A DNA stretch of 64,000 nt. It comes from Takakia lepidozioides (Eukaryota > Plantae > Bryophyta). Within the stretch, counting starts at the first letter, position 1. Every line of letters starts with the position of its first letter. Made by a program: the position numbers and the translations under genes. The stretch is taken from assembly GCA_030704615.1 (NCBI GenBank), contig CM060734.1, positions 7,564,001 through 7,628,000 on the forward strand, read 5' to 3'. Shown here in pieces: positions 1,803 to 55,282 of this stretch. The notes beneath the pieces are model-generated. The model was not told where the DNA came from. It saw nothing but the letters and a program-made list of their open reading frames with translations, and searched no databases.

Positions 1803-3830
1803 TTAAAAAAACCAAAATTGTTGAGCCATCTGAAACACACCATCTTGGTTATCCACCAAGACTACTCCAGGAGTCACCATAACGCGCTCGATGGCTGGCC
1901 TAGTTGGTAGCTCTTGCAACCTTGCAGCTGCGGCCGCCGGCCATGGCGCAGCCGTGGCTGTCTTCACCCTTGGATCCACAACATCCTGCATGGACTGCAT
2001 CTTATCTACTATCCCCACAGACAGCGCTGATGCATCACCTGTCTCACAGAGTGTAGCTGCCAGTCTAAACACTTCAGCTGGCCGAATCCCCGGCATTACA
2101 ATTGTCATTGCAAAAAACAATGGAGCCTGGAAAATTTGCCGTAGCCGCCCCCAACAATGTACTAGCTGTACCGTAGCCTAGTGATAATGGGCACATACCA
2201 CGTTGGATGTGGTTGTGGGTTCAAACCACCGTCTGGTGTGTCATGAAGGTGTTCACCTTTCTGCTGGAAGGCAGTAGCCCTTCAGGGTCAAGTGACACCA
2301 TAAGTTACGCTCCCTTCGGGAGGCGTCATACTTATTTTACTAGTTGTACCTTGTCTCCCAGTAGTATCCACTAGCATCCCCTGAGCCATGCCAACTCTCC
2401 CCAATGGCACTCTTGGCTCTACCCCTGATACACTTGGACGAGCGGGTACCATCGATGGCGTGGTTGGCACTATCTCGGCCAATGTGAAAGATTGGGGAAG
2501 CCTTGTCTGTTGACTTGCTTCCCCTCTTTGTGGATCAAAATCCACATCCGCTCCTTTTGGCTCAGCAGCACGAGTTGCGGCTCGAGTAACAGTAGCTGCA
2601 GAGTCCACATGTAATGGCCCTGCAAGTGCGGCTCCACACATGAAGCCCATACCAATCTGATCTTCCTAGGCATAGGAGGTTGTGCAGGTGGGGCTTGAAC
2701 CTCAGGCCTTGGAGTTGGTGCAACATGAGTAGTTGTCATGGCAGCAAGCCGTTGCTCTAGCTGGGCAAGCCTATCTACCATGCCTTGATCATGACCTTGA
2801 CCCTAAGCCTATGCTCCTTGGTTTTGGTTACGACCTCCACGACGACCTCTGCCTCGTCTTCCTCTCTGAACTGCATTGCCTCGTCCTCGGCCACCATTGT
2901 TCCCTTGGAACTAGCCTGGCCGTAGCTCAGGATGCAAGTCATAACAATGGGCCTCTACATGCCCATACTTGCCACAATGCCCACAGTGCAACTGTGTAGG
3001 TTGTGCCTTTGTCGACCCTTTGCCTTCCTCTGGGCAATCCTTCTTGACATGGGGTCCTCCACAAATCCAACAAGAGACACTCGTCTATTGCTGGCCTGAA
3101 AATGAAGGGAGAGACCTCTGCATCTGAGATCCTCTCTGGCCTTCCCCGGGCTTCATCTGAGCCCCCTTGTTGCCTTGAGCAGGTTGGGGGGTTGGTTGTT
3201 GTTGGCTAGGAACTCCACTTCGTTGTGTCTCATTGCCAAACCCCACCATAACCACCCGCTCCTCCACCATATTAAGCTCTATCCGCTCTGCCATCAAAAA
3301 CACATTAATTGCTAATGTGGGTTGGGCCACTTGTAGGAGAGTTGCGTCCCGCACCCTTCTCCTCAGCTCCTTGTCCGGGATCCTATAGTACCAGAATTGG
3401 ACTGCATGAGCTTCTGTAACCCCTTGGGTTACGTTTATCAAGCGCCTCATGCGAGTGTAAGCCTCCCTCAAACTCTCAGTAGGCCTTCGTTAGAACTCTT
3501 GCAAGCTCCGCAACTTCTCTGTCCTTATCCCTTGATAGTTTCTCCTTAACTCCTCAAAGAACTCCACAATTGGGTTAAAGGCAGGCACATGTGTTAGTGT
3601 ACTTGGGGCTTGAGCTTGGGTGGATGTCCCAGCTCTTGTACCACTTGTCCCACTGGTGCTTGCAAAAGCTGCCGGTGTAGCTGCTGGTGTCCCCGCTGCT
3701 CTTGTGCCTCTGGTGATGGAGATATATATAGTCAGGTGATCAATACTCCCGCCATTCCTCAATCTCCACCTCATGTCCCCGCCTAAACTCACGGTAATCG
3801 TCCATGGGTGGCCCCTCAAGGTGCTGAAGC
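1803..3830 (-). mobile_element. Degenerate Ty3/gypsy-like gag region (no pol or LTR seen)
   Basis: Broken minus-strand ORFs with a retrotransposon-gag-like segment (FFEELRRNYQGIRTEKLRSLQEF*RRPTESLREAYTRMRRLI) and two zinc knuckles, CWICGGPHVKKDC (~3035-3073) and CGHCGKYGHVEAHC (~2943-2985). Confidence 0.7.
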
Positions 3831-6800
3831 AGCCCCTTCCACGCCATAAAAGGCATAAACAGTTGTGGATTCCCCCAGTACCGATCCACCCCTACTGCCT
3901 CCATCTACCAGACACTCAGAACACTATATGTCACCACCACCACAACCACAGAAGCAGACACTCGTCCTCAAACACCTAATATGCCATATGCCGACCCGGA
4001 TGACAACCTCTATACAGCATCAACCTCCCCACCCGACACACTCGACCCCCTCCCCAACTCCCCACCAAATGCCACAGACGCCCACTCACCCCCCCCCCCA
4101 CACAACATAGACGGCACCAATGCCTATATCATAGAAGCCATACTGGGAGTCAAAACCCAAACATCACTTGACGCTTTTGGGGCTACTTGCATAGATACAT
4201 ACTACCACTGCAAATGGGCTGGATACCCTTCAGAAGATAACACATGGTAGATAGAGGATGACCTGTTCGGCCCCCATGACGACTGTGACCCAGACCACAA
4301 CCTGACTCTTCTCATCCCCTTCCATAAATGTACCAACACTGACTACCTATCACATATTCATCAGCAACACATCACCTCTACTCAACCAAGGGACAACCGA
4401 TTCGTTCACCAACCGCTCTTTGCCCCCAACGTACACATTTGCATAACTGAATGCAACCCCGACAAAGATGTTAAGCATAACCAACCACTTATTCACATGG
4501 GCCCCCGCCATTCCAATATCTACGCGCCACATGGCCGCTTCATGGGGATCATCCCTAACAACCGACTCGCATGGCTCTGGGAAAAGTACTCTGCTACAAG
4601 CGTACACCCACACTCCCTCCAACCTCCAAAACAAGACTTCGCTACTGAAATATATTGGCTTGTCGACCGATATCTCAAAGACATCCCTCCCAAGAAGCCA
4701 CGGTCCCTCGCCAGACTAGAAACTGCACGCAATACCACCAGATGTTCTTGCCTTACTCATCAACGTCTTTCAGATTAATCACTCATATTACTCTAGCCCA
4801 CTTACATGCCCTTTGGACATACACACTTTCTCCAGTCCACACCATAGAGACTGCATTTTTGGTGCCACGGGTAGTGCCACCCAACATACCTGGGAGGGCA
4901 AGGGCTTGGCCCACCCCACCCCTGGCCCTCTTACTCATGAAGCTCTCCAATGGGCACGGTTTGCTGCTCACTCCTCCCCCTCCACCTCCAGTACAATCCT
5001 CATCCTCACACAGCAAAACATACCTAGTCCCTCCCACCCTCTCCTACGCCTTCCAGTAGGGGTCACCCTACTAGCCACAATCGATCCAAATCAAATGCAA
5101 TATGCTCATACCCCCCCTCTCCCCAAATACCTCAAACGTAAAGAACCTACCCTTATCTTGATCTTGCACGTTCAAAACCCCCTACACACAGACATACCGA
5201 CACCCTTCTCACCAACTCGAACAGTTGTTAACCATAAATCATAAAATGAAAGCATCCATCCACTACCCAGATATACCCCCTCACATCTGCACCCCCGTCA
5301 CACCCCTTCGGATTAAAACAAATAAAGCTTGGGACATGGCGAAGTCGCGCCTCCCCCCAAGGTACACCAACAACACCCCCTCCCCCCATTCCTTCAATAT
5401 ATCAACAAAGCACCACCCTCAAGTATCCCCCAGCAAACTCACACTATACGGATGGCTCCCTCACCAACCATAAAGCAGGGTATAGCATTTACCACGCTGG
5501 CAACGGGCAGGGAGTTGCATTCCGGCTCCCGGGCCCTGCCACCATTCTCAGAGCAGAACTTATGGCCATCCAGGACGCTCTCTCCTTGCTTGGTGCCTTC
5601 CCCCCTCCACACTATATCTTTACTGACAGCCTCACCTCCCTATATCTGATCCGAAACCACGTCTCCCGCCCCTCTTCCCACCATCATCACCCCGATCATA
5701 ACCTTATTGCTGCTATTGTTCACAAAGTCACCTCTATCACCCACCTAGTCCACTTCCTCAAAGTCCGCTCACACATTGGTATCCATGGGAATGATGAAGC
5801 CGATCTCCTCGCTCAACTCGGCACCTCTCAACCCCTAGTATTACCCATGAACGATCCCATCCACATCGCTCACACCCACCCCTTTTGGTTCATTCACCCA
5901 GTCCCCGACCCCCATGCACCTAGACCAGTCCGTAACCTCCTAACCACTCTGACCAGAGAAGCACACAAACAAGCTGCCGCCTCCATCAGCCATACCAAAG
6001 TACACATCCAAAAATGACTCAATATGATATCCTACACCATAAACTCTCAAATCACTTCTGGCTAACCAAAGCCACCACTGACGCACAAATCCGACAAACA
6101 CTTAAATTTAGGTACGCCCAATACATGGGCCACCAACGCAAACACATCTTCTGGCCACACTTGTTCCCATCCCCTTACTACCCACTATGCTCCACCACCC
6201 ACCAAGCTCGCGACACCTGGCCGCATCTTCTTAGCCAATGTACACACCCGATCATACATGGCCTACATATCACGAGACACAACCATGCAGTCTGGCACCT
6301 CCATAAGCTTTTTCAAAAACGTGCGGAAACTAGGTGGTTCTCACTCGTGAATGCTGGCACCTACCAGGGTAGGCCACCTGACCATACAGTACCACCGTGG
6401 CTGGTACCATGCATTTGTACCCGTTCACCATGCTCCTGCCCAGCTAGACTCTGCCCAGACATACTCCTAGTGCATGGCCTGCCCATCAGTACTCTTCCCC
6501 CTACCTCACCATCCCCACAACTCATCATTCACTTTATTGAATTCACTTTCTGCCATGACCGCTATCCAAATGATTCGATTTTAGAGAAATGTCAAAAATA
6601 TGCCCCGCTCATCCTTGCAATCCGCAGGCGTGGCTGGAAAATCGGCCCGCTAACTGTTATTACCACCGGTACCCGTGGTGGCATTCATAACGCCAATATC
6701 AATGCCATACACGATAATTTCCAAATTCCCATCCCACCCATCCATAAATGCTTCAAAGAAATACATCTCACGGCACTCCGCTCACTCACAGCTATTATCA

Positions 6801-6886
6801 CCAACAAATGCCAATTGGAATCCGGCACCTCAAACCCCCCCTAGGTCTCCCATGGTACCAACCCCCCCCCATTTCCAAAGGTCACC

Positions 6887-6990
6887 GGGTGCCCGTAGGG
6901 CACCCCTTCTTTTATAGGGCCCACCCCCGAAAGGGGGCAGTAGCCGCAAGGCGAAGTGGCTCTTAGTTACGCCGGCTTCGGCCAGAGTCT
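6887..6990 (+). ncRNA. Structured RNA element in the LINE 3' UTR
   Basis: Hairpins GGGTGCCC-gta-GGGCACCC, CCCCC-GAAA-GGGGG, GCC-GCAA-GGC (flanked by AGTA/GAA) and GGC-TTCG-GCC within about 100 nt. Confidence 0.6.

Positions 6991-7032
<42 letters not shown>
6989..7032 (+). repeat. (TC)n microsatellite at the LINE 3' end (tail or target site)
   Basis: About 20 TC units directly after the structured 3' UTR. Confidence 0.9.
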
Positions 7033-7036
<4 letters not shown>

Positions 7037-7061
7037 ACAGGTGTGGTTGTGAGTTTTCATC

Positions 7062-10000
7062 ATGGAGGTGTCACCAGTTGCTGAGGGGAGTGCCAGTACG
7101 AGCACCAGCGATACTAGTGGGTACACAAGACGAGGTGTATGGTTTAGGCCGCCCTCACCTTCAGTGTCTCCTGAGGGAGGTTTAGATTCGGAGTCAGAGG
7201 GATTCTCGCCGAGGGTGCAAGCCATTTCCATGCCATTGTTGTGGGATACGATGGAGGAAATGTATGGAGCTACCAACGGGCCACGTAGATACTCCGGAGC
7301 TGTGGGCACCATCGAGCTTGATGATTTCATACATGAGTTTTGATAGTTAGTGTGATTTAATGCTGCAGAGATTTCCAGTCAGGAAGGTAACGTATCTGCC
7401 TCCCGAAGTCGATGGCAATGTAATCTTCGAGTTTCCACCTGTTACTTCGTCAAACAAAGCCTCAGGGATGTTAACAGACATGGATCGAAAGCATGACGGA
7501 CACCCCTGGTGTGTGACGAAGACCAATAGCACGAAAATTGCTGATGTTGTTCGTGTACGATACGTCCTCTGTGCGGGGAAGCTGAGGTGCCTCAATCCCG
7601 CCTGCTTCCACTTTCTCTCCAAAGGAGGGCGGAGAAACGAGACGGATTGGACTGGCACAACCCATCATCTATTCATTGTCTCCAGTCAAGCTTCGGCGGG
7701 TACTTTCAAGTGCGCACATTGCAAAGAACCACCAACGTGCATGTCCATGTGCAGAGCCAAGCAATATTATGTAATCCGTTTGCTCCCGGACTTGACTAGA
7801 GCTTGCATACACGTTGGGGTCCACTGCCACCCCTTGGCGAGAGGCAACATCCGGGAGGCTGTGCAGGAAGCACACGACATCATAAAAGAGGAGGTGAAAT
7901 TGAGCCCCGGAGCCAGACCAAAGCAGATTCAGCTCAAGACAGCCCACAAGATTGCTCTTGGCAAAATCATGCCTAAGATGGTTCAGACCAAGTGCCCTTG
8001 AACGAAGAGGAGATGCTTGACCTGTTGGAGTCCGTCTCGCACGTTTGTAGTCCGAATGTGCGGAATCACATCGTATCTTGCAAGTAGGAAATCGGCCGGG
8101 GATCGGACATGCACTCAATCCTAGAGGTGAAACAAAGGATTGGATATGACTACATCCAAGGTAGCAAGTTTCCAGGGCAAGGCATCGAATCCGATCGTTG
8201 TTACATTTTTAAAATGTCAACATGTGGGCCTGGGAGTGGAGTCAACTTGGTCACTCGCATGACAACTGGAAACTTGCCAAATGCTTGGGTGATGTTTGAC
8301 CACATCAAGCAAATTACAAACCATCAGTGGGTGACTATGGCTGCGCATGTTTATGACTATCACTCCAAGAGGCTCATGACGATTGCAATATGCGAGATGA
8401 AAGGGGAGGACACACAGTCGGAGATGCATCTGTGGGAGGGCATAAACGAGTAGATGGCAAGGGCAGGTTTGCCAGAGCCCAATTTCAGGGGATTCATGGC
8501 AGACAACGCTCAGGCCAACTGGGCAGCGGTGCGGCGTGTGTACGGCAAGGACCCCAATGTTTCAATGGAGGGGAAAGAGAGATCCTGTGGATTCCATTGG
8601 TTGCAGAGTTTATCTCACTACACTACCAAATTTGTTGCTAGCTCATTCCAAGCTGAACACCATGTCCTTTGTACGGCGTGGAAGGATGCACCCACATTTG
8701 ATGACGCGGAGGTTAAGTTTGCTATCATCGAGGCTTGGTGGAACACGTCAGGTGCAGTGGAGACAACCAATCTTGGAGCCTTGCACAGCTGGTCGGGGTG
8801 GTGGCATTTCCGGTATCGATAGTTCAGACAGTACATGCGGGAGGTATGATGCCAGACTTTTCCTGCAATTGTCGTTCTATTACGGACCTTTCCATTTTTC
8901 CCTCACCATTGTTTCTGTCCTTGTAGGAGCGGTGCCTGGATTCCGACATGGACATGCCAAACACGAATATGGCAGAATCAGTCCACTCCTCCTGGCGAGC
9001 GTCTTCTGCCGCACATCTAGTGGACATAGTGACGGCCACAACGGAGGACATTGACAGAGCAATCATGCAGCAAGCCACGTACTACAAGTTCCTGAGCGGA
9101 AAACAATGGGGCTTTGGGCCAGACATGGAGGAATTGTTGGTACGAACAGCTTTGAGGTCCAAGAATCCACTGAAATGGGCAACAACATTGCGAGAGAAGA
9201 TCAAAGGGACGCCTCTGCACCGCAGAGGTGAACACCTAGAGGGGGACGTCCGTACTCGCCCTGTGAGGCGGAGGATTGAAGAGGAACCCGGGTGCGAAGA
9301 GGATTCCTGGAGATCCGACAGGAACATTCGGACAGCACCTCGAGGTCCTGCCATGTTGCCGCACTATGTGTCTTCCAGCAGTGGAAGCCCAAGAGTTTCC
9401 AGATCGCCATCGCCTTCAGCGGGGATTCCGTGCAAGAAATTCCCACCGCTCGCTTGCCCCAGATTCCGCCCGCTGTTATGCAGTATGGCCAACCTATTGT
9501 GGAGACGACTGTGTTTGCGTCACAGTGGAGAATTGCTCGCACAAGGCCGGCGTTTCGAGGCAGGTGTTCCGCAATTCAAGTGGATACACGACAATGTTGT
9601 TTAGAGATGATAAGGAGGAATCCAGATGGGGCTATCCCTGCTCCTACTTTTACATGAAGATTTGTCTATGCAAAGTTTGCGGAGGCGACAACTACCCAGT
9701 TCTGGTTCTGCATGCACAACATTATGACTTGCATGTATGGAAAGCCCAAGTACGGCATACAAACAATGTCAGAGGCTCCCCCAGTGTGGCCGGTGGAACC
9801 AGGATGCGATCTGAGTCAGGGTGAGGCCGACGTCCTTACTGTTGCAGGATTTCGGATGGTGCAGCACACTGACGTCCCTAGACAACCATTTCCGCTTCCA
9901 CAGCCTCCACCACCGACCCCTGTGAGAGCAAGAGCAATGGGACGCGACAACTCTAAGCATCCTACACACCGTTGGGGGAAACCGAAGAGGTGGCGACCTC

Positions 10001-10356
10001 CCTCAAAAGTGAACGAGACAAGGATGGGGAATGCACTTCGGATGAAATGTACAATCCAGAGCTCAACAAAAGTGCCCCCATCAGGCTTCGGGCATGTGTA
10101 TCAGATGGCCACGACAGGCTCAGTTGTCCGCAATGAGGTGTACACCATCACCATTTCAGAATTACCCACCTGCAATTGCACCGACTTCCAGATCATGGCG
10201 AACAAGGGGGCATCATACTGCCCTTGCAAGCATCTGTACTACGTGTACCTAAATAGACTCCGGTGTAATTCCAAAACTCATCACTTCATACATGCACCAA
10301 GGTTGAGCCCCCAAGAGGTGTACACTCTTCTGAATATGGATCCAGGGGACCAGTGA
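7062..10356 (+). mobile_element. Mutator-like (MULE) transposase pseudogene with Cys-rich N-terminal domain and C-terminal SWIM zinc finger
   Basis: WVMFDH..FMADNAQANW..CGFHWLQSL..TNMAESVHSSW (MULE-type DDE and CxxH motifs); CAGKLRCLNPAC..CAHC..C Cys cluster; SWIM CNCTDF..CPCKHLYYV. Several stops and frameshifts; probable intron at 8844-8927. Confidence 0.75.
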
Positions 10357-10948
10357 GCTTGGCTTGCGGGCCACAACACAATGTTACGCCCATCCTTTTC
10401 GGAGTTTCAGTTATAGTAGAACTGTACTGCTGCAAGTACCTCTGACTTTGGCCACATAAAGGTTCGACTTATGTCTTGCCTACCAATAACCTGTTTTGCT
10501 CGAACTAAGATAATACTATGTCATTCACTTCTGTTTCCACGTGCTTGTATTTTTGTTTGTTGGAGGGTTCCTGTTTTTCTGCTCTCCCAAACTTTGCTTT
10601 CTTCATTCGACCCCCGGCAAGGAAATGCGGCGCCGCATTTCCAAGTAACGTCGTAGGTACTGGTAGTTGCGGCCTTCGTCATAGCAAGATAGTCGCACCC
10701 AGCCTTCAGGGAGCTGACCGTCGCCAACACCGAACCCCCCAGAAATTTCGCACGTGCGAACCCTAATGCGGCACCGCATTTCCCAGTTGAGTCGCAAACC
10801 TTTCCCGCCGAATACCCGAAGATGACAGAATTGTGAAGTACTGCAGACTCTATTGGTGCAGACTCTATTGGTTCAATCGCGGCAGAAGGGTCAGCTTCAT
10901 TCCAATGTTAAGGCCATTTACAGGGGTCGAAAAAGTATTCATCCCACA

Positions 10949-12190
10949 GCTTCTCCTCATATTTGTTACCTGTTTTTGGATACTTTCATGTTGTCACATT
11001 GGCAGTATCATGTCAAAGTCACTCCAGACAAGATTCACTCAACCAGCTAACTTGCAGAATTCAACATGGAAATTTAGGGCGGATTCTGATAAGAAGGAAA
11101 AACAGGGTGAAATGTGTTGAAGAAGGTGCCTTCATTAGCAGCGCCTGATTTTATCCATTGTGTCGCTGCTGCTTCGGCTTCCAGTTGACCATATGTTTCT
11201 TGCAGCTATCCTCCACAGGGAATATTCATAGGTAATCTAGAGCTTGAAATCCGGGCCTCATGGATGAAACTGGCCCCACAATGTATCCCTGCACTCCTTC
11301 AGCTATCCATGCCTATGTACAAATCGTGAATACACTCAGCCTTGCTGCAGCTAATAGTTGAAGCAGCTGACACTGACGCCCTAGCCCTACCTACAGACTT
11401 AACATGTCAAAATCACTCCAAAACCACCATAGATCCACCAACAAGCTTCTCCTCATCTATGTTATTTGTTTTTGGATACTTTCCTGCTGCCACATCGGCA
11501 GTAACTTGTCAAAGTCACTCCTAACCACCACAGATCCACCCAACGAGCTAACTTACATAATTAAATATGCATCTTAGGGCCGAGTCTGATGAGAGGGTAA
11601 ACAGGCAGATATAGGTTGAAGAAGAAGGTGCCCTTTGTCGACCTTGACCTTTGTGTCATGACCCATGGAGGATTTGACCGACCATCAACTCAAAGAACCT
11701 CTTGTGTGTGCTGCTTGTGTTTGTAGTCAGGTACTGTCGGATTGGTCTGTGAGAACCACCACGGTGCAGCTGAGCAGGCAGAGATTTAAACACGGCCTGC
11801 TAAGACCAAGCTGACTCTCCCAAGAACCTTGTAAACATCAGGAAGAATACCAAATCATGGTACTAATAGGAGCCAAGAGCCCACATTTGCAGGATGGACA
11901 AACTTCTTCACATTGTACATTAAGAAAAAGCCACACCTTATGATTGCGGTTGTCGCACCATTGTGAAGGATCTTTAAAAAACTCATGCCAGCTCTGCTCC
12001 GTGCTGCAAATTCAGGGCCGAGTCTGATGAGAGGGCAAAACAGGCTGAAATAGGTCGAAGAAGAAGGTGCCCTCACCACATTGTCCTCGACCTTGTGTCA
12101 CAACCCATGGAGGATTTGACTGACCATGAACCCAAGAGGACCTCTTGTGTGTGCTGCTTGTGTCTGTCATCAGGTAATGTCGGATTGGTC
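10949..12190. repeat. Diverged local segmental duplications (three overlapping copies)
   Basis: 10949-11130 resembles 11445-11632; 11575-11748 resembles 12011-12190 (shared agggccgagtctgatgagaggg...gaagaaggtgccc...tgtcggattggtc). Confidence 0.8.
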
Positions 12191-12344
12191 CCCTATGATT
12201 CCATGTGGATCAATAGCTACAAGAAACCTGCTGCATTAGATGGTCAAGTAAAGGTAGCAACTGCAGTGGCACAATTGATAAAATCAGGCACCTCAACCAT
12301 GACCACAACTTCTGAAAGAGGATCAAGAGAGGGAGTCCACAATG

Positions 12345-13660
12345 CCTCTTCTACTGGGCATGTGAAGATGCTTTGTGAGGCAGGCAGACTAACAGAGGCT
12401 CTACAACTTTAAACCAACGAGGCATTTCAGCAGATTCAGATACGTCTGTCTGTCTCTTGCTTAAGTGCATCAAGATGAAAGGTCTAGAAGCTGGAAACAG
12501 GTGCACACTCACATTATCCAAAGTGGATTCATGCCAAATGTTTTTCTACTCAACACCCTTGTCAACATTTATGTTAAGTGTGGGAGCATCATGGATGCTC
12601 ACCAAGTTTTCACAGAGTGCCTCAACGATCTTTAATCACGTGGAATATAATGTTGGTAGGATTTACCAAGGATGGGTGTGGTAGGAATGCTTTGGAGACC
12701 TATGAGCAACTACTATGCAAAGGATGAAGCCCAACCACATCACGTTTGTTTGTGTTTGCAATGCGTGTGCAAGAATGGGAGCTCTGGAAAAGGGGAAAGA
12801 GGTCCATGGTGACATCGTCAAAGCTGGATTTGTATGAGATGTCATTCTGAACACTGCCCTGGTGGACATGTATGCCAAATGTGGGTGCATTAAGGATGCG
12901 AAGGAGTTTTCAACACTATGCCTGAACGAGATGTGGTGTCATGGAACGTGGGGGGAACGTGATGCTTGCAGGGTATGCACATCAGGGACAAGGTATGGAG
13001 GCTTTGGAGACCTATGATCAAATATTGATGGGGGAAGGGGTGAAGCCCAACCACATCACGTTGCAGCATACTGGTACTTCACAGCCATGGCGGGTCTCTC
13101 AGCCCCTCCATTTTTTTTCTTTTGTTAGAGCAGCAACTCTGCTATCTCCTTCCCCTTGCTTATGCCGATCGTTAAAGTGGAAATTGTACCAGTTGTCATT
13201 CTGAACTCTGCCCTGGTGGACATGTAAGCCAAATGTGGGTGCAACAAGCCTGATGCAAATGGAGAGTTCGACAATATGGCTGAACGACATGTCGTATTTT
13301 GGAGTGCCATGATTGCAAGGTATGGGATTAAGGCTTTGGAAACCTAAGAGCAAATGATGTGGGAAGGGATGAAGCCAGACCAGGTCATGTTTATTTGTGT
13401 TTGTAATATGCATATGTGAGCCTAGCAGCCCTGGGAAGGGGCAAAGAGATTCATGGTGACATTATCAAAGCTGGAATTGTACCAGATGTCATTCTGACAT
13501 TCCCCTGGTGTACATCTACGTCAAATGTGAGCCTGGCAGCTCTAAAAAGGGCACAAAGGTCCATGGTGACATCGTCAAATTTGGAGTTGTATCACTAGAT
13601 GTCACTCTAAACACTTCATTGGTGGATATGTATGTCAAGGCAGCCCTAGGAGTGGATGTC
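12345..13660 (+). pseudogene. PLS-class PPR protein pseudogene
   Basis: GHVKMLCEAGRLTEALQL*, NTLVNIYVKCGS, KPNHITFVCVCNACARMGALEKGKEVHGDIVKAGF, NTALVDMYAKCG motifs with many stops and frameshifts. Confidence 0.9.
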
Positions 13661-14122
13661 ACTTTGGGTGACATGGTAGCTGGCACCACCATTCTTTGGA
13701 ACTACAAGTTACTGGATTCATTCTCGGAATGATTTATGATGTTCATAGATCTCTTGACATGTCCACGATAGTGCTGGACCTAGCTGCACAACAGATTTTC
13801 TTTACTACTTCACTTGGGCAGTGATCTATGGATATGGCAACATGGCCCTCATGTTGGTCATCTGTAGAATGTGGCCAAAACTTGTTTTGCAAAACACTCT
13901 TGATATAAACCAGTTTTGAGCCATCCAAATGTTTTTGGTTCTGACCATGTATTTGTATTTTATGTTTTGTTGTATTTGTAATATATTTTCAATGCAGTGC
14001 AGCGAATCAAAAAATTTAAATACAAAACCCACTAATTCACATACGTATAGATATAAACTAAAAGTAAATAAAAAAAAATGAAAAAACGAAATAACAGTAA
14101 TAAATAAAAAGCCTCCCCAATT

Positions 14123-14185
14123 CATATATACATATATATATTATGTATATATATATGTATGTATTTTTATTATGTGTATATATAC
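14123..14185. repeat. Imperfect (AT)n microsatellite
   Basis: catatatacatatatatattatgtatatatatatgtatgt... Confidence 0.85.
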
Positions 14186-14672
14186 ACCCCCAGAGTGAAA
14201 CATATTTACTAAAATATGTCATCTTTTACTAATTCACAGTAGAATACTACACTATATAAAGTCAAGCAAACTCACTATCATTGATTCACAGTCAAATCGT
14301 AACTAAACATCATGGAACATAGTCAATATGTTCCACTTCAGTTAAATCACTTTACTACACATCATGCATCCACGTCACTCTGCCCTTAAGCCATTAACTA
14401 TAAGTCATGCATCCACGTCATAATGCACTTAAACCACTTTACTACACGTCATAGCCACGTCGCATCCACGTCATACTATGGTACAATCACTTTACTACAC
14501 GTCACCCCCTGGGTTTTACTGTCACATTTCATTGGCAGAACCTGGCACCTTGATGCGACTGCTTGACTGAATCGACTCGACACTTGTCACTCATGTTTGA
14601 CTCTGCAGGCTGGGAGTAAAAATGTCACAAACGACTCAAAAATGAGTCAAATACAGAGTTGAAAAACCCACC

Positions 14673-17500
14673 TTGTATTATAGTGTTGGATCCCTTGCCA
14701 CCAGTATCCAGAGTCTGATCCACCTGAGCCTCACAGACTCTACGCCCCCGCACATTATTCTCATCCAAGAAACCAAACTAAACACTAACAACACCAATAG
14801 CTCCTATATTAACAAACTCCTGCCAACCTACTACCTCCTTTACGGGACCCCCATGACAGCCCCACAGTGTCTCCGTTGTCGCTCTGCCCTTTACTGTCCT
14901 ACTCGAGGTGGTGTGGCACTTGGCATTCTCCGCACCCATCACTCCCCCAGTACCACCACAAAAATTATACTACCCCTCCCTCTCCGATCTCGCCTTCAAA
15001 TTGTCCAGCTGCACCTCCCTGCACTTACCCCCATCACCCTCATTCACTTATATGTGCCATCCCACACTAAAGACCTATATTGGACACAATCTCTAACACA
15101 GTCACGCACCCCGCGCAACAACACCATCACTACATACTAGCGGGCAGGAGACTTCAACCGTGATATTGCTCTACTGGGTCACACATACAACGGGGTCCAC
15201 AAATCCCCTTCCTCCCTTGACCAAGACTAGGCCCGCTTCATACATAACCATCATTTTAGATACATACCTTCAGACCACCACTATTCGAGGCAAGGAGGCC
15301 TCAACTACTCATCTCTAAGCCTTATAGATGGTTTCTATCTCAAGTCACCTGGAGAAATACCCGCATATCGCACAAGCCATATCCATATCGATAGCATCTG
15401 CAACTCGGACCATTACCCAATATTTGTCTGTCTCCCTCCATCTCTCATTCCTATCCGACACATCCCACCTATCCCGACCCATGACCCACAACCCACAACC
15501 CCGTATCCTCTTACCCTTACCTCAACACAATATCACCGCATTTCTAAAACACTTTCAACCTCATGCATCACTCCTTACCCAAAAACTCTCCTACACCCTT
15601 TCCGACACAAATATGATGCAATCCTTTGAGTCTACCTGGATCGAAGCCGAGCGCACCCTTACAACCGTCCTCCAAGAAATGACCAAAAGCGTGTTGGCAA
15701 CATGTTCGGCCCCCCAGGACCTCCCCCAGACCACCCGATCCAAACAGAATGGTGGATACCTTACCCGCTCACAAAAACGTGCCTGGACCTCTCACCTTAC
15801 CCATCATACCATATGTCGTGCCCGTACTATCATCCCCAATTCCCCATCCAACAGTCACTACACAGAATGGAGACGTGACCCCCGCATTACTTGCCTAAAC
15901 TCTCTTCCTATATGCCAAGCCCTCCTGCCCCCTCCTGTGGATCACAACACCATGCCAAATTGGGGTGCTGCCCTTGCCAAACTAGGAAGGGACGCAAAAA
16001 AAGCCGCATATCTCATAACCAAACAAAAAGCTAGCGACAACCATAAGAAGTTTATCACCTCCTTTGGCTAGCTCCTGGTGCATGACCATCCCAAAAAAGC
16101 TCACAAAGCCATTTTTAACCCTACGCTCAACCCACCAGTTGACTGCCTTAAACATCGGCTGGGCCACTTCTTAACAAACCCCATTGATATTAATAAAGAA
16201 ATATGGATACAAGCATCCACTTCCTATACGCCCGCTATCACAAACTGCCTACACCCTGACCATCATCACCCAAACTGCATATGTAAAGTCAAACATTACC
16301 CATGGCATGACTTCGACGGATTCTCATTAGACAAACGTGGGGAACCCACGGACCGCATACATGACCTATTCACACTAGACCTCTATGACTCTTGCCTTAA
16401 AGGTCTATCCAAATCTAAAGCCCCCGGACCAGATATGATCCCTAATGCTATATTACAAGCGCTTGACCCCCATCTCCATACCCTCTTCTTCAAAATTTTC
16501 AAACTATTTTACCAACTCCAGCGTATCCCACCTACATGGAAACATAGTCGCACCATCCTACTCTTCAAGACAGGCGATCCCACTGACCTCGGTAACTACA
16601 GACCCATAGCCCTAGCTAACATTCTCTATAAATTGTTTACCAGCACACTAACCACGCTGCTATCCAACTACGGTGAACAACACCATATTCTGAGTGACCC
16701 CCAGGAGGGCTTTCGAGCCACGGGTAGCACAACCCGCCAAATTTACAATACGTCCTCTCAGCCCTCGAAGATGCCAAGCTCACTAAATAAGATGTTTATC
16801 TCTTGTATATAGACTTTAAAAATGCCTTCGGATCCTTAGATCATGCTAGATTACTTGCAATCATGACGGACCTCGGCTACCCCATCGATGCTATCCAACT
16901 CATTGGTCATATCTATACCAACAGCACTACGGAGTACTCCGGCTCATACTATGGTACTACCCCTCCTATTCCTATCCTTCGTGGTACCATACAGGGTGAC
17001 ACCCTCAGTCCATACCTATTTATTATCTTTTAGAACCACTACTAAGATGGTTAGCATGCGGAAATCTCGGCTAACACTATAAAATCTCCCCTAGCGAAAT
17101 CTCTCGCTGCCGCATACGCTGACGACCTAGCCATCCTCGCTTACAAACCCCGGCCAAGTCAACAAGTTATCACGCTTTAACCTATGGTCCGGCATGGAAC
17201 TTAGCCTCCACAAGTGCGTCGTTACCGCAGCCACCCACCACAGTAAATTAACAAAAACTGCGATTGCCTCCCATTGTAAACTCTAACACAAACCGCTTCC
17301 ACCCCCGCTCCCCCCTCCCCCTCATGCTCACCTAGCACTCCCGCAACTCACCATGCCAACCCAGATAACCTAGACGCATACGTTATCGAAGTCATCCTAG
17401 GTATTAAAACCCAAACTTCTACAGACTCATATGGGGCCACATATGTTGATACATATTACCTTTGCCAATGGGCTGGCTTCACAGCCGATGATAACTGACG
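14673..17500 (+). mobile_element. Dualen/RandI-like non-LTR retrotransposon, 5' part (copy 2): APE, RT, internal deletion, chromodomain
   Basis: APE IILIQETKL, RGGVA, AGDFN, LIDGFY, NSDHYP; RT KAPGPD, NYRPIAL, QEGFR, YIDFKNAF, RGTIQGDTLSP..EPLLRWL, AYADDL (~17113). 17376-17495 (AYVIEVILGIKTQT..YYLCQWAGFTADDN) is homologous to the copy-1 chromodomain. Confidence 0.88.
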
Positions 17501-53179: not shown

Positions 53180-54090
53180 TTGCCCTCAAGGCAAAGGGCC
53201 GCGACACTAAGGGCTGAGCTCATGGCCATCCATGACGCTCTTTCTCTACTTGATGCCTTCCCCCCCCCATACTATATCTTCACTGATAGCCTCACCTCTC
53301 TATTTCTTATTCGAAACCACATCTCCCGCCCTTCTTCCCATCATCATCACCCCGACCGCAACCTCATTGCCACCATTGTCCTAAGGGCCATTTCCAAAAA
53401 CCATCCAGTCCATTTACTCAAAGTCCGCTCGCACACTGGCATTCATGGTAATGAGGAAGCTGACCTACTCGCTCAACTCGGCGCCTCTCAACCCACAATC
53501 GAACCCACAGCCGACCCTATCCACATTGCCCATACCCACCCCTTCTGGTTTATACACCCCGTCCCGGACCCCCCCTTACCCAGACCAGTCTAAAACCTTA
53601 TGACCACTTTGACCAGAGAAGCAAATAAACAAGCTGCAGCCTCCATCAGCCACACCAAAGTGCACATCCAAAAATGGACTCAATCAAATGTATTGCACCA
53701 TAAACTCTCAAATCATTTCTGGCTAACCAAAACTACCACTGACGCACAAATCCGACAAACACTCAAATTCACATACGCCCAATACATGGATCACCAGCGC
53801 AAACACATCTTCTGGCCGCATATGTTTCCATCCCCATACTGCCCATTATGTTCAACCACTCACCAAGCTCGTGACACCTGGCCACATCTCCTCAACCAAT
53901 GTACGCACCCGATCATACATGGCCTTCATATCACGCGACACAACCAGGCAGTCTGGCATCTCCTGCATAAGCTATTTCTAAACCGTGCTGAAACCAGATG
54001 GTTCTCGCTCATAAACGCTGGCACCTACCAAGGTCGGCCACTCGACCACACTGTGCCACCCTGGCTGATACCATGCATATGTACCCGATC
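53180..54090 (+). mobile_element. Dualen/RandI-like LINE fragment (copy 3): RNase H, CCHC, start of RLE
   Basis: Clear homology to 5535-6425: RAELMAI, IFTDSLTSL, KVRSHTGIHGNEEAD, intact CPLC..HLLNQC, RHN. Confidence 0.9.
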
Positions 54091-55282
54091 TCAATTGCTC
54101 ATTTCGATTTGCTCCCCAGGCTGGCGGTTCTTGCAATATTGGCCAGCATTGAGATAGCTTGCGTTGTGTATCTAAGCTACTGTAAGGCTCTCAAATTTCT
54201 AGAAGTCACTGATCATCACTGGATAGGTGCTCTAGCCACCAATACTTGTAGCAGATAATTCATGACTACAAACTACAATTGGCAAGCAGAAACTCGTATG
54301 GTGAGAGAGAGTCTAGAAAGTTAGCGAACGAATCAACACATACAGTCGGAGGCAGATCTGTGAGAGAGAGAGAGAGACACACATACCTCGGTAGATTAAA
54401 AGTTTCTAGTGCTGAACGTGAACGCAACGTTCACAATTTTATTTTATTTTTTTTGTTTTTATGTTTTTTTTTTCAAAATTTGAATTCAACTTGTAGACAG
54501 TGACATATCCTCCCATTTTCAATTCGAAATTTAAACTAAACCGTCACACTCAAAGTAACGTAACTAAAAGAAGGCCTGGAACTACAAAAAACCCTCAGGA
54601 ACTGACTAGTGCAACCAGGCCAATGATGGATACAACAGCTAACAATTGCATTTTGGGTTACCCATCTGGGATTACATGGACTGACAATGCTACTATTGAC
54701 ATTAGCCGGACCCATCTTTAGTATGCAAAACTTTGCTAGTGTCTCAATTGTCCAATATGTGCACCGTTGGCTATTGGGGGGACCATCAAACCGGCACTGT
54801 TACATTTTTTAATAATGATTCGCGAGTGCACGTTGTTTTCATTACAAAGCAACAACCATGTAGCTGACTAATCAATTTTCGAGTGCACTATTTGCCTCAA
54901 AAACTCTCTTTAGAAAATGATGGAACTTCCAGTACTGCTATCCTTCGGAGCTCCCCAGAATCATATACAGAGGGGGGATTGTGGCCTCCTTGTTGTTGGA
55001 TTACTGACTTCCATCAACAGAGACAACATAGCCCTGGACTTGCTCCGCAGTTTGTTGCTGCCTAAACTCGCGCTAGGTTTGTGTGCTTGAGATAACTGGT
55101 GAGATAACTAGTGAGGAAGTGCTGATGTAAAGATGTAAAGATCCAGTTGCATCTGTCAAAGTCCATTTGGGGTGTAAGTAGGTGACCAAAACGGGCAGGA
55201 GGCCACCTGACCTCACCACAGAGCACAAACTCTTCATAAGTAAGTGACTTGCGCAGCATAACTTCCCTGTTCAAGTCCAAGC

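Follow-up and report, generated by a model that had tools for sequence, protein, structure and literature searches.

Introduction

Retrotransposons of the Dualen/RandI clade, which lack long terminal repeats (non-LTR type), are said to go back to Kojima and Fujiwara in 2005, with Dualen-4b_cRei of Chlamydomonas and Dualen-1_GCr of a cryptophyte as reported examples. To our knowledge Dualen is the only group of long interspersed nuclear elements (LINEs) that keeps both the old restriction-like endonuclease (RLE) and the newer apurinic/apyrimidinic-type endonuclease (APE), and for that reason it is read as an intermediate in LINE evolution. Here we set against this group a 64,000-nucleotide stretch of the Takakia lepidozioides genome (GenBank assembly GCA_030704615.1, contig CM060734.1, positions 7,564,001 to 7,628,000), which we call the window and in which positions are counted from the first nucleotide. 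Three stretches of the window derive from a LINE, and the architecture of their relatives makes it very likely that they are independent dead fragments of a single non-LTR family of Dualen/RandI type.

Two other kinds of retroelement enter the comparison: R2, which targets 28S rDNA via N-terminal zinc-finger and Myb domains, and the chromoviruses, in which a chromodomain directs integration to heterochromatin. Dualen/RandI itself is defined by the presence of APE and RLE together, along with a reverse transcriptase (RT), RNase H and a CCHC motif (PMC5029228, PMC3708506, PMC4640811, PMC9977147). A survey of 2015 reported the clade from green algae only (PMC4438587), and the literature we found knows Dualen from green algae, namely Chlamydomonas and Haematococcus, and from cryptophytes. 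Cryptophyte Dualens carry SET and C48 peptidase domains (PMC5029228), and those of Haematococcus have a 2A-like peptide ahead of APE (preprint, bioRxiv 10.64898/2026.06.17.732966). Active Chlamydomonas Dualens produce very long target duplications, which have been attributed to the two nucleases (PMC9977147), and algal RandI families end in microsatellites, not poly(A) (PMC3747384). Full-text literature searches, Repbase aside, returned no paper joining Dualen with mosses, ferns or liverworts; nor did they return any that links the cap methyltransferase PCIF1 to non-LTR elements, or chromodomains to LINEs that bear an RLE.

Results

Three related, inactivated copies lie in the window

Self-BLASTN of the window showed that the three copies are real and mutually related. 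All lie on the + strand and share a strand bias, with 34-37% C and 14-15% G. Copy 1 (3835-7033) comprises a chromodomain, a domain resembling PCIF1 (also known as CAPAM), RNase H, a CCHC knuckle, RLE, a 3′ untranslated region (UTR) and a (TC)n tail. Copy 2 (about 14640-17495) runs from APE through RT into a chromodomain, and copy 3 (53180-54100) carries RNase H, CCHC and the start of RLE. Positions 4131-4241 of copy 1 align with 17385-17495 of copy 2 at 71% identity over 111 bp, and positions 5547-6435 of copy 1 align with 53207-54100 of copy 3 at 82% identity over 894 bp. Because their overlap differs by 29%, copies 1 and 2 are separate insertions and not two halves of one copy. All three copies are pseudogenes, very probably dead fragments of one non-LTR retrotransposon family. 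In copy 1 the frame is interrupted by one or more in-frame stops (one at 4248) and by three or more frameshifts. Copy 2 contains several stops and several frameshifts, and copy 3 a single stop, at 53591.

Related contigs join the two nucleases in one element

Natural open frames from relatives were used in place of a consensus, and the link between the nucleases was drawn from related contigs (L numbers) found with the RLE open reading frame (ORF) of copy 1 and with an open frame of L004. L022, a contig of 11.3 kb, encodes between positions 3685 and 11146, in order, a 2A-like peptide, APE, RT, a chromodomain-like segment, the PCIF1-like domain, RNase H and CCHC-RLE, in a reading frame broken by just two in-frame stops and one frameshift. 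Its APE scores 38.4 bits with PF14529 and 34.2 bits with PF03372, RVT_1 is also present, and these are followed by PCIF1_WW (33 bits), RNase_H (58 bits) and a CCHC-RLE segment that matches profile A3 with an E-value of 8e-120. A degraded copy, L016, has the same order on one strand, with APE at 5334-5747, RT at 6688-7627, the chromodomain and PCIF1-like segment at 8106-8968, RNase H at 9195-9848 and CCHC-RLE at 9767-10714. L021, which has two breaks, takes in ORF1, the 2A peptide, an intact APE and the whole RT and extends into the PCIF1-like domain; L020 reaches from the C-terminal part of APE to the start of RNase H.

Every junction is also bridged independently by overlapping intact ORFs from the database (P numbers). 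APE and RT are joined in P0247, RT and chromodomain in P0300, RT and PCIF1-like domain in P0183, PCIF1-like domain and RNase H in P0181, and PCIF1-like domain, RNase H and CCHC-RLE in P0001 and P0002. N-terminal to RT, L022 and P0247 exceed the cut-offs of both PF14529 and PF03372, and L021 exceeds that of PF14529. A phmmer search of the APE against Protein Data Bank (PDB) sequences gave no match, and a small profile gave weak ExoIII/APE matches only (E 0.02). On the 3′ side of RT, Pfam RNase_H scores 49-58 bits in P0001, P0002, L005 and L022. An initial annotation of the window, made from its sequence, had proposed that one element encodes APE, RT, chromodomain, a methyltransferase-like domain, RNase H, CCHC and RLE, and had suggested a search for single copies holding both nucleases. 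The near-intact L022 and the degraded L016, both related contigs outside the window, carry this whole order and bear the proposal out.

Other relatives are shorter. L002, L015 and L017-L019 are 5′-truncated in the manner typical of LINEs, and the contigs of P0001, P0002, P0151, P0168, P0173, P0169 and P0008 are short or 5′-truncated and end before RT. A metagenome scan yielded contigs of at most 2.2 kb only, with useful open frames from L004-L006. A MIKC MADS-box gene and a PPR-DYW gene were found on the contigs of the relatives, which are thus plant DNA.

Judged from these relatives, an intact element is predicted to measure at least 11 kb and to encode, besides a large ORF1, a polyprotein some 2,480 residues long. 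The predicted order within the polyprotein is 2A-like peptide, APE, RT, chromodomain, PCIF1/CAPAM-like domain, RNase H, CCHC and R2-type PD-(D/E)xK nuclease, after which come a 3′ UTR and a microsatellite tail.

Several features outside the enzymatic domains were seen in the relatives. A 2A-like, putatively ribosome-skipping peptide lies about 190 residues 5′ of APE in three independent copies, as the canonical D-I-E-S-N-P-G-P in L021 (7751-7777) and as variants in L022 (about 4270-4300) and L016 (4663-4689); copy 2 of the window is truncated before this position. The upstream ORF1 is very large, at L021:1927-6903, L022:3-3770 and L016:3674-4030, and is open over 1,256 to 1,659 codons. L021 and L022 share 49% identity over roughly the last 680 residues of ORF1, for which Pfam gives no match; the N-terminal part is of low complexity and may stay open merely through the C/A-rich strand bias. 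In the 3′ UTRs of L015-L019, about 150-230 bp past the RLE stop (for example L016:10900-10935), a segment resembles a reverse-complemented tRNA T-arm and acceptor; ARAGORN called no tRNA in the 3′ UTRs of the relatives.

The C-terminal domain of copy 1 is an R2-type endonuclease

The ORF at 6014-6844 of copy 1, 276 residues long, has 823 relatives in a representative protein library, mostly fragments, and a database look-up showed no gene called for it. In single-sequence searches it matched nothing among Pfam models or PDB sequences, and Pfam has no model for such a domain. We built a structural model from a 27-sequence alignment, with a mean predicted local distance difference test (pLDDT) score of 88, and compared it with known folds using Foldseek. 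Seven matches fell at E ≤ 1e-3, all of them R2 proteins (E 5e-6 to 8.5e-4; TM scores 0.53-0.63 over about 270 columns), and the next were Prp8 and bunyavirus cap-snatching nucleases, both PD-(D/E)xK folds. Of the 27 sequences, 17-25 keep the columns RHN, PD, E and K..KY, all of which are present in this ORF, with RHN at 6275-6283 and the PD-(D/E)xK core at D 6458, E 6539 and K 6587 and 6596. The CCHC column is conserved as well. In copy 1 the knuckle (6179-6241) has Tyr for its first Cys; that of copy 3 is intact. By its modelled fold, the ORF is a CCHC plus R2-type PD-(D/E)xK endonuclease, in agreement with the RLE reading of the initial annotation. A feature search of the ESM Atlas returned generic RNase H clusters only.

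The RT lies nearer to R2 than to L1

The complete RT P0186, from the L021/L022 subfamily, scores 118 bits with RVT_1 and finds R2 as its best PDB relative (109.6 bits, E 1.5e-30), followed by human L1 ORF2p (58 bits, E 7e-15), and the shorter RT piece of L016 gives the same ranking. An R2 score about twice the L1 score argues against an RT inside L1, as the initial annotation had asked to be checked, and fits a deep branch. Elements of L1 or RTE type have APE as their sole endonuclease; here an RLE is present, and the architecture with RNase H and RLE is incompatible with L1 or RTE, the RT itself having been compared with L1 and with no RTE reference. R2-type elements have RLE and no APE; here APE stands 5′ of RT on the same contigs. 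What was found instead is the feature set of Dualen/RandI: APE, a non-LTR RT, RNase H and a C-terminal CCHC and RLE, with both nucleases in one element.

More distant RT relatives, 37-43% identical and with GC-rich coding sequence, form one continuous family with these in the database search and are probably algal. Two of them, P0294 and P0295, also bear the PCIF1-like module. One protein with about 40% identity to the family RT (P0306 / P0320, WP_444832181.1) carries the annotation RNA-directed DNA polymerase of Agrobacterium sp.; its source is probably eukaryotic sequence within a bacterial assembly.

A chromodomain and a degenerate PCIF1-like module separate RT from RNase H

Pfam Chromo (cut-off 25.1) scores 27.7 bits in copy 1, 41.9 bits in L003 and 43.4 bits in P0300; in the L004/L022 subfamily the chromodomain has drifted below detection by this profile. 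In copy 1 the domain (4122..4250, E 2.6e-6) lies in an ORF at 3981-4250 and ends with the in-frame stop at 4248-4250, and its aromatic-cage residues, read by eye in the translation, are Y, W and Y.

L004, L005, L006 and L022 exceed the PF12237 (PCIF1_WW) cut-off of 31.1 with scores of 32.0-33.3 bits, and others stay just short of it. Searched against PDB sequences, single sequences and a four-sequence profile (A2) found nothing, and a 19-sequence profile (A7) matched 6IRX (E 1.8e-4) and 6IRV (E 2.5e-3) with no other significant match. In the alignment, SPLT of the family stands opposite SPLN of PCIF1, and D..FGS.G opposite D..FGSRG. The catalytic NPPF is replaced by H/F/I-P-P/T-D/N in all members of the plant family, and since its Asn and Phe are lost, methyl transfer is unlikely. 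Of the two distant RT relatives, which are equally far removed in RT, P0294 has SPLN and NPEY at the positions of the PCIF1 motifs, and in P0295 the module is present with both motifs missing. Of the methyltransferase-like domain that had been proposed, homology to PCIF1/CAPAM therefore stands, from PF12237 and the A7 profile, and the catalytic motif does not; going by sequence, the plant-family module is very probably a homologue of PCIF1/CAPAM and not a methyltransferase.

Features of the individual copies

In copy 1 the initial annotation had read the order chromodomain, RNase H, CCHC, RHN and RLE; the order and the RLE hold, and it is the knuckle, with its missing first Cys, that departs from it. 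APE and RT are absent, which points to 5′ truncation, and the truncation point and a Pro-rich linker ahead of the chromodomain occupy 3835..4121, with protein similarity to L004 beginning at 4032 and with unrelated ORFs upstream on the - strand. After the chromodomain, a conserved spacer (4251..4719) aligns to L003, L004, L005 and L006 and leads to the PCIF1/CAPAM-like domain, in a shifted frame at 4720..5241, which matches P0151 by BLASTP (E 2.4e-40) and has H-P-T-P at the NPPF position. RNase H lies at 5400..5990, with Pfam RNase_H at 5562-6017 (E 5e-5) and tblastn matches to P0001 and P0002 that span 5418-6053. Beyond the RLE ORF, the sequence reads as a 3′ UTR (6845..6989) and a (TC)n microsatellite tail (6990..7033) that forms the 3′ end of the element. 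At 6845-6992 we saw a number of short GC hairpins with loops of four bases; the fold energy of the 3′ UTR is no better than that of shuffled sequence (z -1.13), so that we endorse no special RNA structure there.

The APE of copy 2 (14640..15470) shows the full set of catalytic motifs, QET, GGVA, GDFN, IDGF and SDH, in one frame, with in-frame stops at 15141 and 15228, and matches the intact L021 APE in tblastn (E 3.8e-29). A spacer (15471..16467) matching L021 and L020 in tblastn (E 1e-12 to 1e-13) separates it from a frameshifted RT (16468..17260), which gives a weak Pfam RVT_1 match, has YADD at about 17110-17145, and is in pieces 60-75% identical to the RTs of L016, L020 and L021. The gap from RT to chromodomain is about 0.33 kb, against about 1.2 kb in intact relatives, which indicates that copy 2 lost some 0.9 kb comprising the C-terminal part of RT and the thumb. 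The chromodomain fragment (17364..17495) is by itself below Pfam significance and is recognised by its nucleotide identity to 4131-4241 of copy 1; similarity ends abruptly after it, and everything 3′ of the chromodomain is missing. The motifs, the L021 match and the chromodomain identity uphold the earlier view that copy 2 holds APE and RT and ends in a chromodomain. Copy 3 (53180..54100) encodes RNase H, the intact knuckle and the start of RLE in a single frame (matched by P0001 and P0002 in tblastn at E near 1e-65), and with its identity to copy 1 it supports, as had been suggested, the RNase H-CCHC part.

Around the copies we noted a few further sequences. Directly next to the point where copy 1 is truncated on its 5′ side lie ORFs on the - strand (3085-3819) that look like pieces of retrotransposon gag; they are putative and have no Pfam match. 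Just 5′ of copy 2, at 14380-14560, lie several ACGT-core repeats (CCACGTCAT-like) that are dissimilar to the 5′ regions of the relatives. A run of + strand ORFs at 7360-10356, between copies 1 and 2, includes a SWIM-like-looking Cys/His pattern. Readings of the ORFs between the copies as MULE/SWIM or PPR were dropped, as Pfam gives nothing at E ≤ 0.01.

Discussion

The organisation of the family suggests how an intact element might move. It would be copied through target-primed reverse transcription, with a first-strand nick by APE priming cDNA synthesis from the 3′ tail and RNase H removing the RNA template. The second strand would be cut by RLE, as has been suggested for active Chlamydomonas Dualens (PMC9977147). 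Through its chromodomain the complex probably attaches to methylated histone H3, which would lead to insertion into silent chromatin as in chromoviruses, and the PCIF1-like module is most likely non-catalytic and may serve in RNA or cap binding or as a scaffold. A more far-reaching idea, which we hold to be speculative and rather improbable, is that a land-plant branch of dual-nuclease elements fused a histone-methyl reader, steering insertion into silent chromatin, to a PCIF1-derived module, maybe still catalytic in distant NPEY relatives, that binds or marks the RNA of the element at the end near its cap and so lets the element recognise its own transcript. If so, all of Dualen would share the module as an ancient part that has so far gone undescribed.

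Several points weigh against assigning the window copies to a single Dualen/RandI-type family. As the initial annotation had said, no copy in the window runs from APE to RLE, each of the three being partial, and both nucleases were found together in L022 and L016; the relatives that provide the link have RTs only about 47-75% identical to that of copy 2. The assignment was made by architecture, with R2 and L1 as the only RT references. The model of the chromodomain and PCIF1-like segment is poor (pLDDT 59) and its fold matches are weak, PCIF1 (6IRV and 6IRX) coming out on top in Foldseek, then the chromodomains of Chp1, CBX7, SUV39H1 and LHP1. A target-site duplication was looked for around copy 1 and none was found. 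How APE and RLE share the work, where the chromodomain directs insertion and what the PCIF1-like module does are all things that we infer.

One rival reading is that two unrelated elements lie side by side, copy 2 being an ordinary APE LINE with an acquired chromodomain and copy 1 an RLE-type (R2/NeSL-like) or other retroelement that has nothing but the chromodomain in common with it. The sole link between them in the window is indeed the 111 bp at 71% in the chromodomain, and chromodomains are mobile modules; yet L022 and L016 hold both halves in order on one contig, L021 and L020 go from APE via RT into the PCIF1-like domain, and the intact ORFs P0183, P0300 and P0181 cross the junctions, so we give this reading very little credence. 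Least probable of all, and hardly credible, is that copy 1 is a piece of a chromovirus, a chromodomain Ty3/gypsy LTR retrotransposon. Chromodomain, RNase H and CCHC are all found in chromoviruses, and the putative gag-like ORFs without a Pfam match adjoin copy 1. Against this, the order is chromodomain, PCIF1-like domain, RNase H and CCHC-RLE with no integrase or protease, the C-terminal domain has the R2 endonuclease fold, the 3′ end is a microsatellite and not an LTR, and the relatives have a non-LTR RT and APE upstream.

A separate deep lineage of true dual-nuclease LINEs, outside named Dualen/RandI and with APE and RLE convergent or independently retained, is a somewhat stronger contender, though still an improbable one. 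In its favour are the comparison of the RT with R2 and L1 references alone; an RT much nearer R2 than L1, as expected of any basal APE lineage; and a chromodomain and PCIF1-like domain that are absent from published Dualen descriptions (PMC5029228, PMC9977147). However, the order APE-RT-RNase H-CCHC-RLE agrees in every point with Dualen as defined in the literature (PMC5029228), and the distant, probably algal RT relatives are continuous with the family, two of them bearing the PCIF1-like module.

We therefore retain the Dualen/RandI-type reading. The evidence supports a Dualen-type LINE in plants that is unusual in carrying a chromodomain and a degenerate PCIF1-like module; the window copies are ordinary dead fragments of it, and the interest lies in the family. 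A multi-copy plant lineage extends the range of Dualen and provides numerous natural variants with which to ask why both nucleases persist. The embedded chromodomain would be the LINE counterpart of chromovirus targeting, and the PCIF1-like module ties a transposon to the machinery of mRNA-cap modification.

Set beside known systems, the family resembles chromoviruses in encoding, within a transposon, a chromodomain whose aromatic cage is readable, but here the domain sits mid-polyprotein in a non-LTR element and not at the integrase end, and targeting is something we only infer. With PCIF1/CAPAM, the cap-specific m6Am methyltransferase (6IRV-6IS0; PF12237), it shares aligned SPLN/SPLT, D..FGS.G and G-x-x-A-[N]-P-P motifs, whereas the family domain is part of a transposon polyprotein, has NPPF replaced, and has no WW domain that we found. 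R2 of Bombyx, Taeniopygia and Platysternon (8GH6, 9DOU, 9NL2, 9NL3) has the same C-terminal CCHC and PD-(D/E)xK fold and provides the closest solved relative of the plant-family RT (110 bits), but is without APE, RNase H, chromodomain and PCIF1-like domain. Unlike Dualen/RandI as described in the literature we found, the plant family lies on plant contigs and places a chromodomain and a PCIF1-like domain, which that literature does not mention, between RT and RNase H; like Dualen/RandI, it unites APE, RT, RNase H, CCHC and RLE in one element with a microsatellite tail and accessory domains that vary among lineages.

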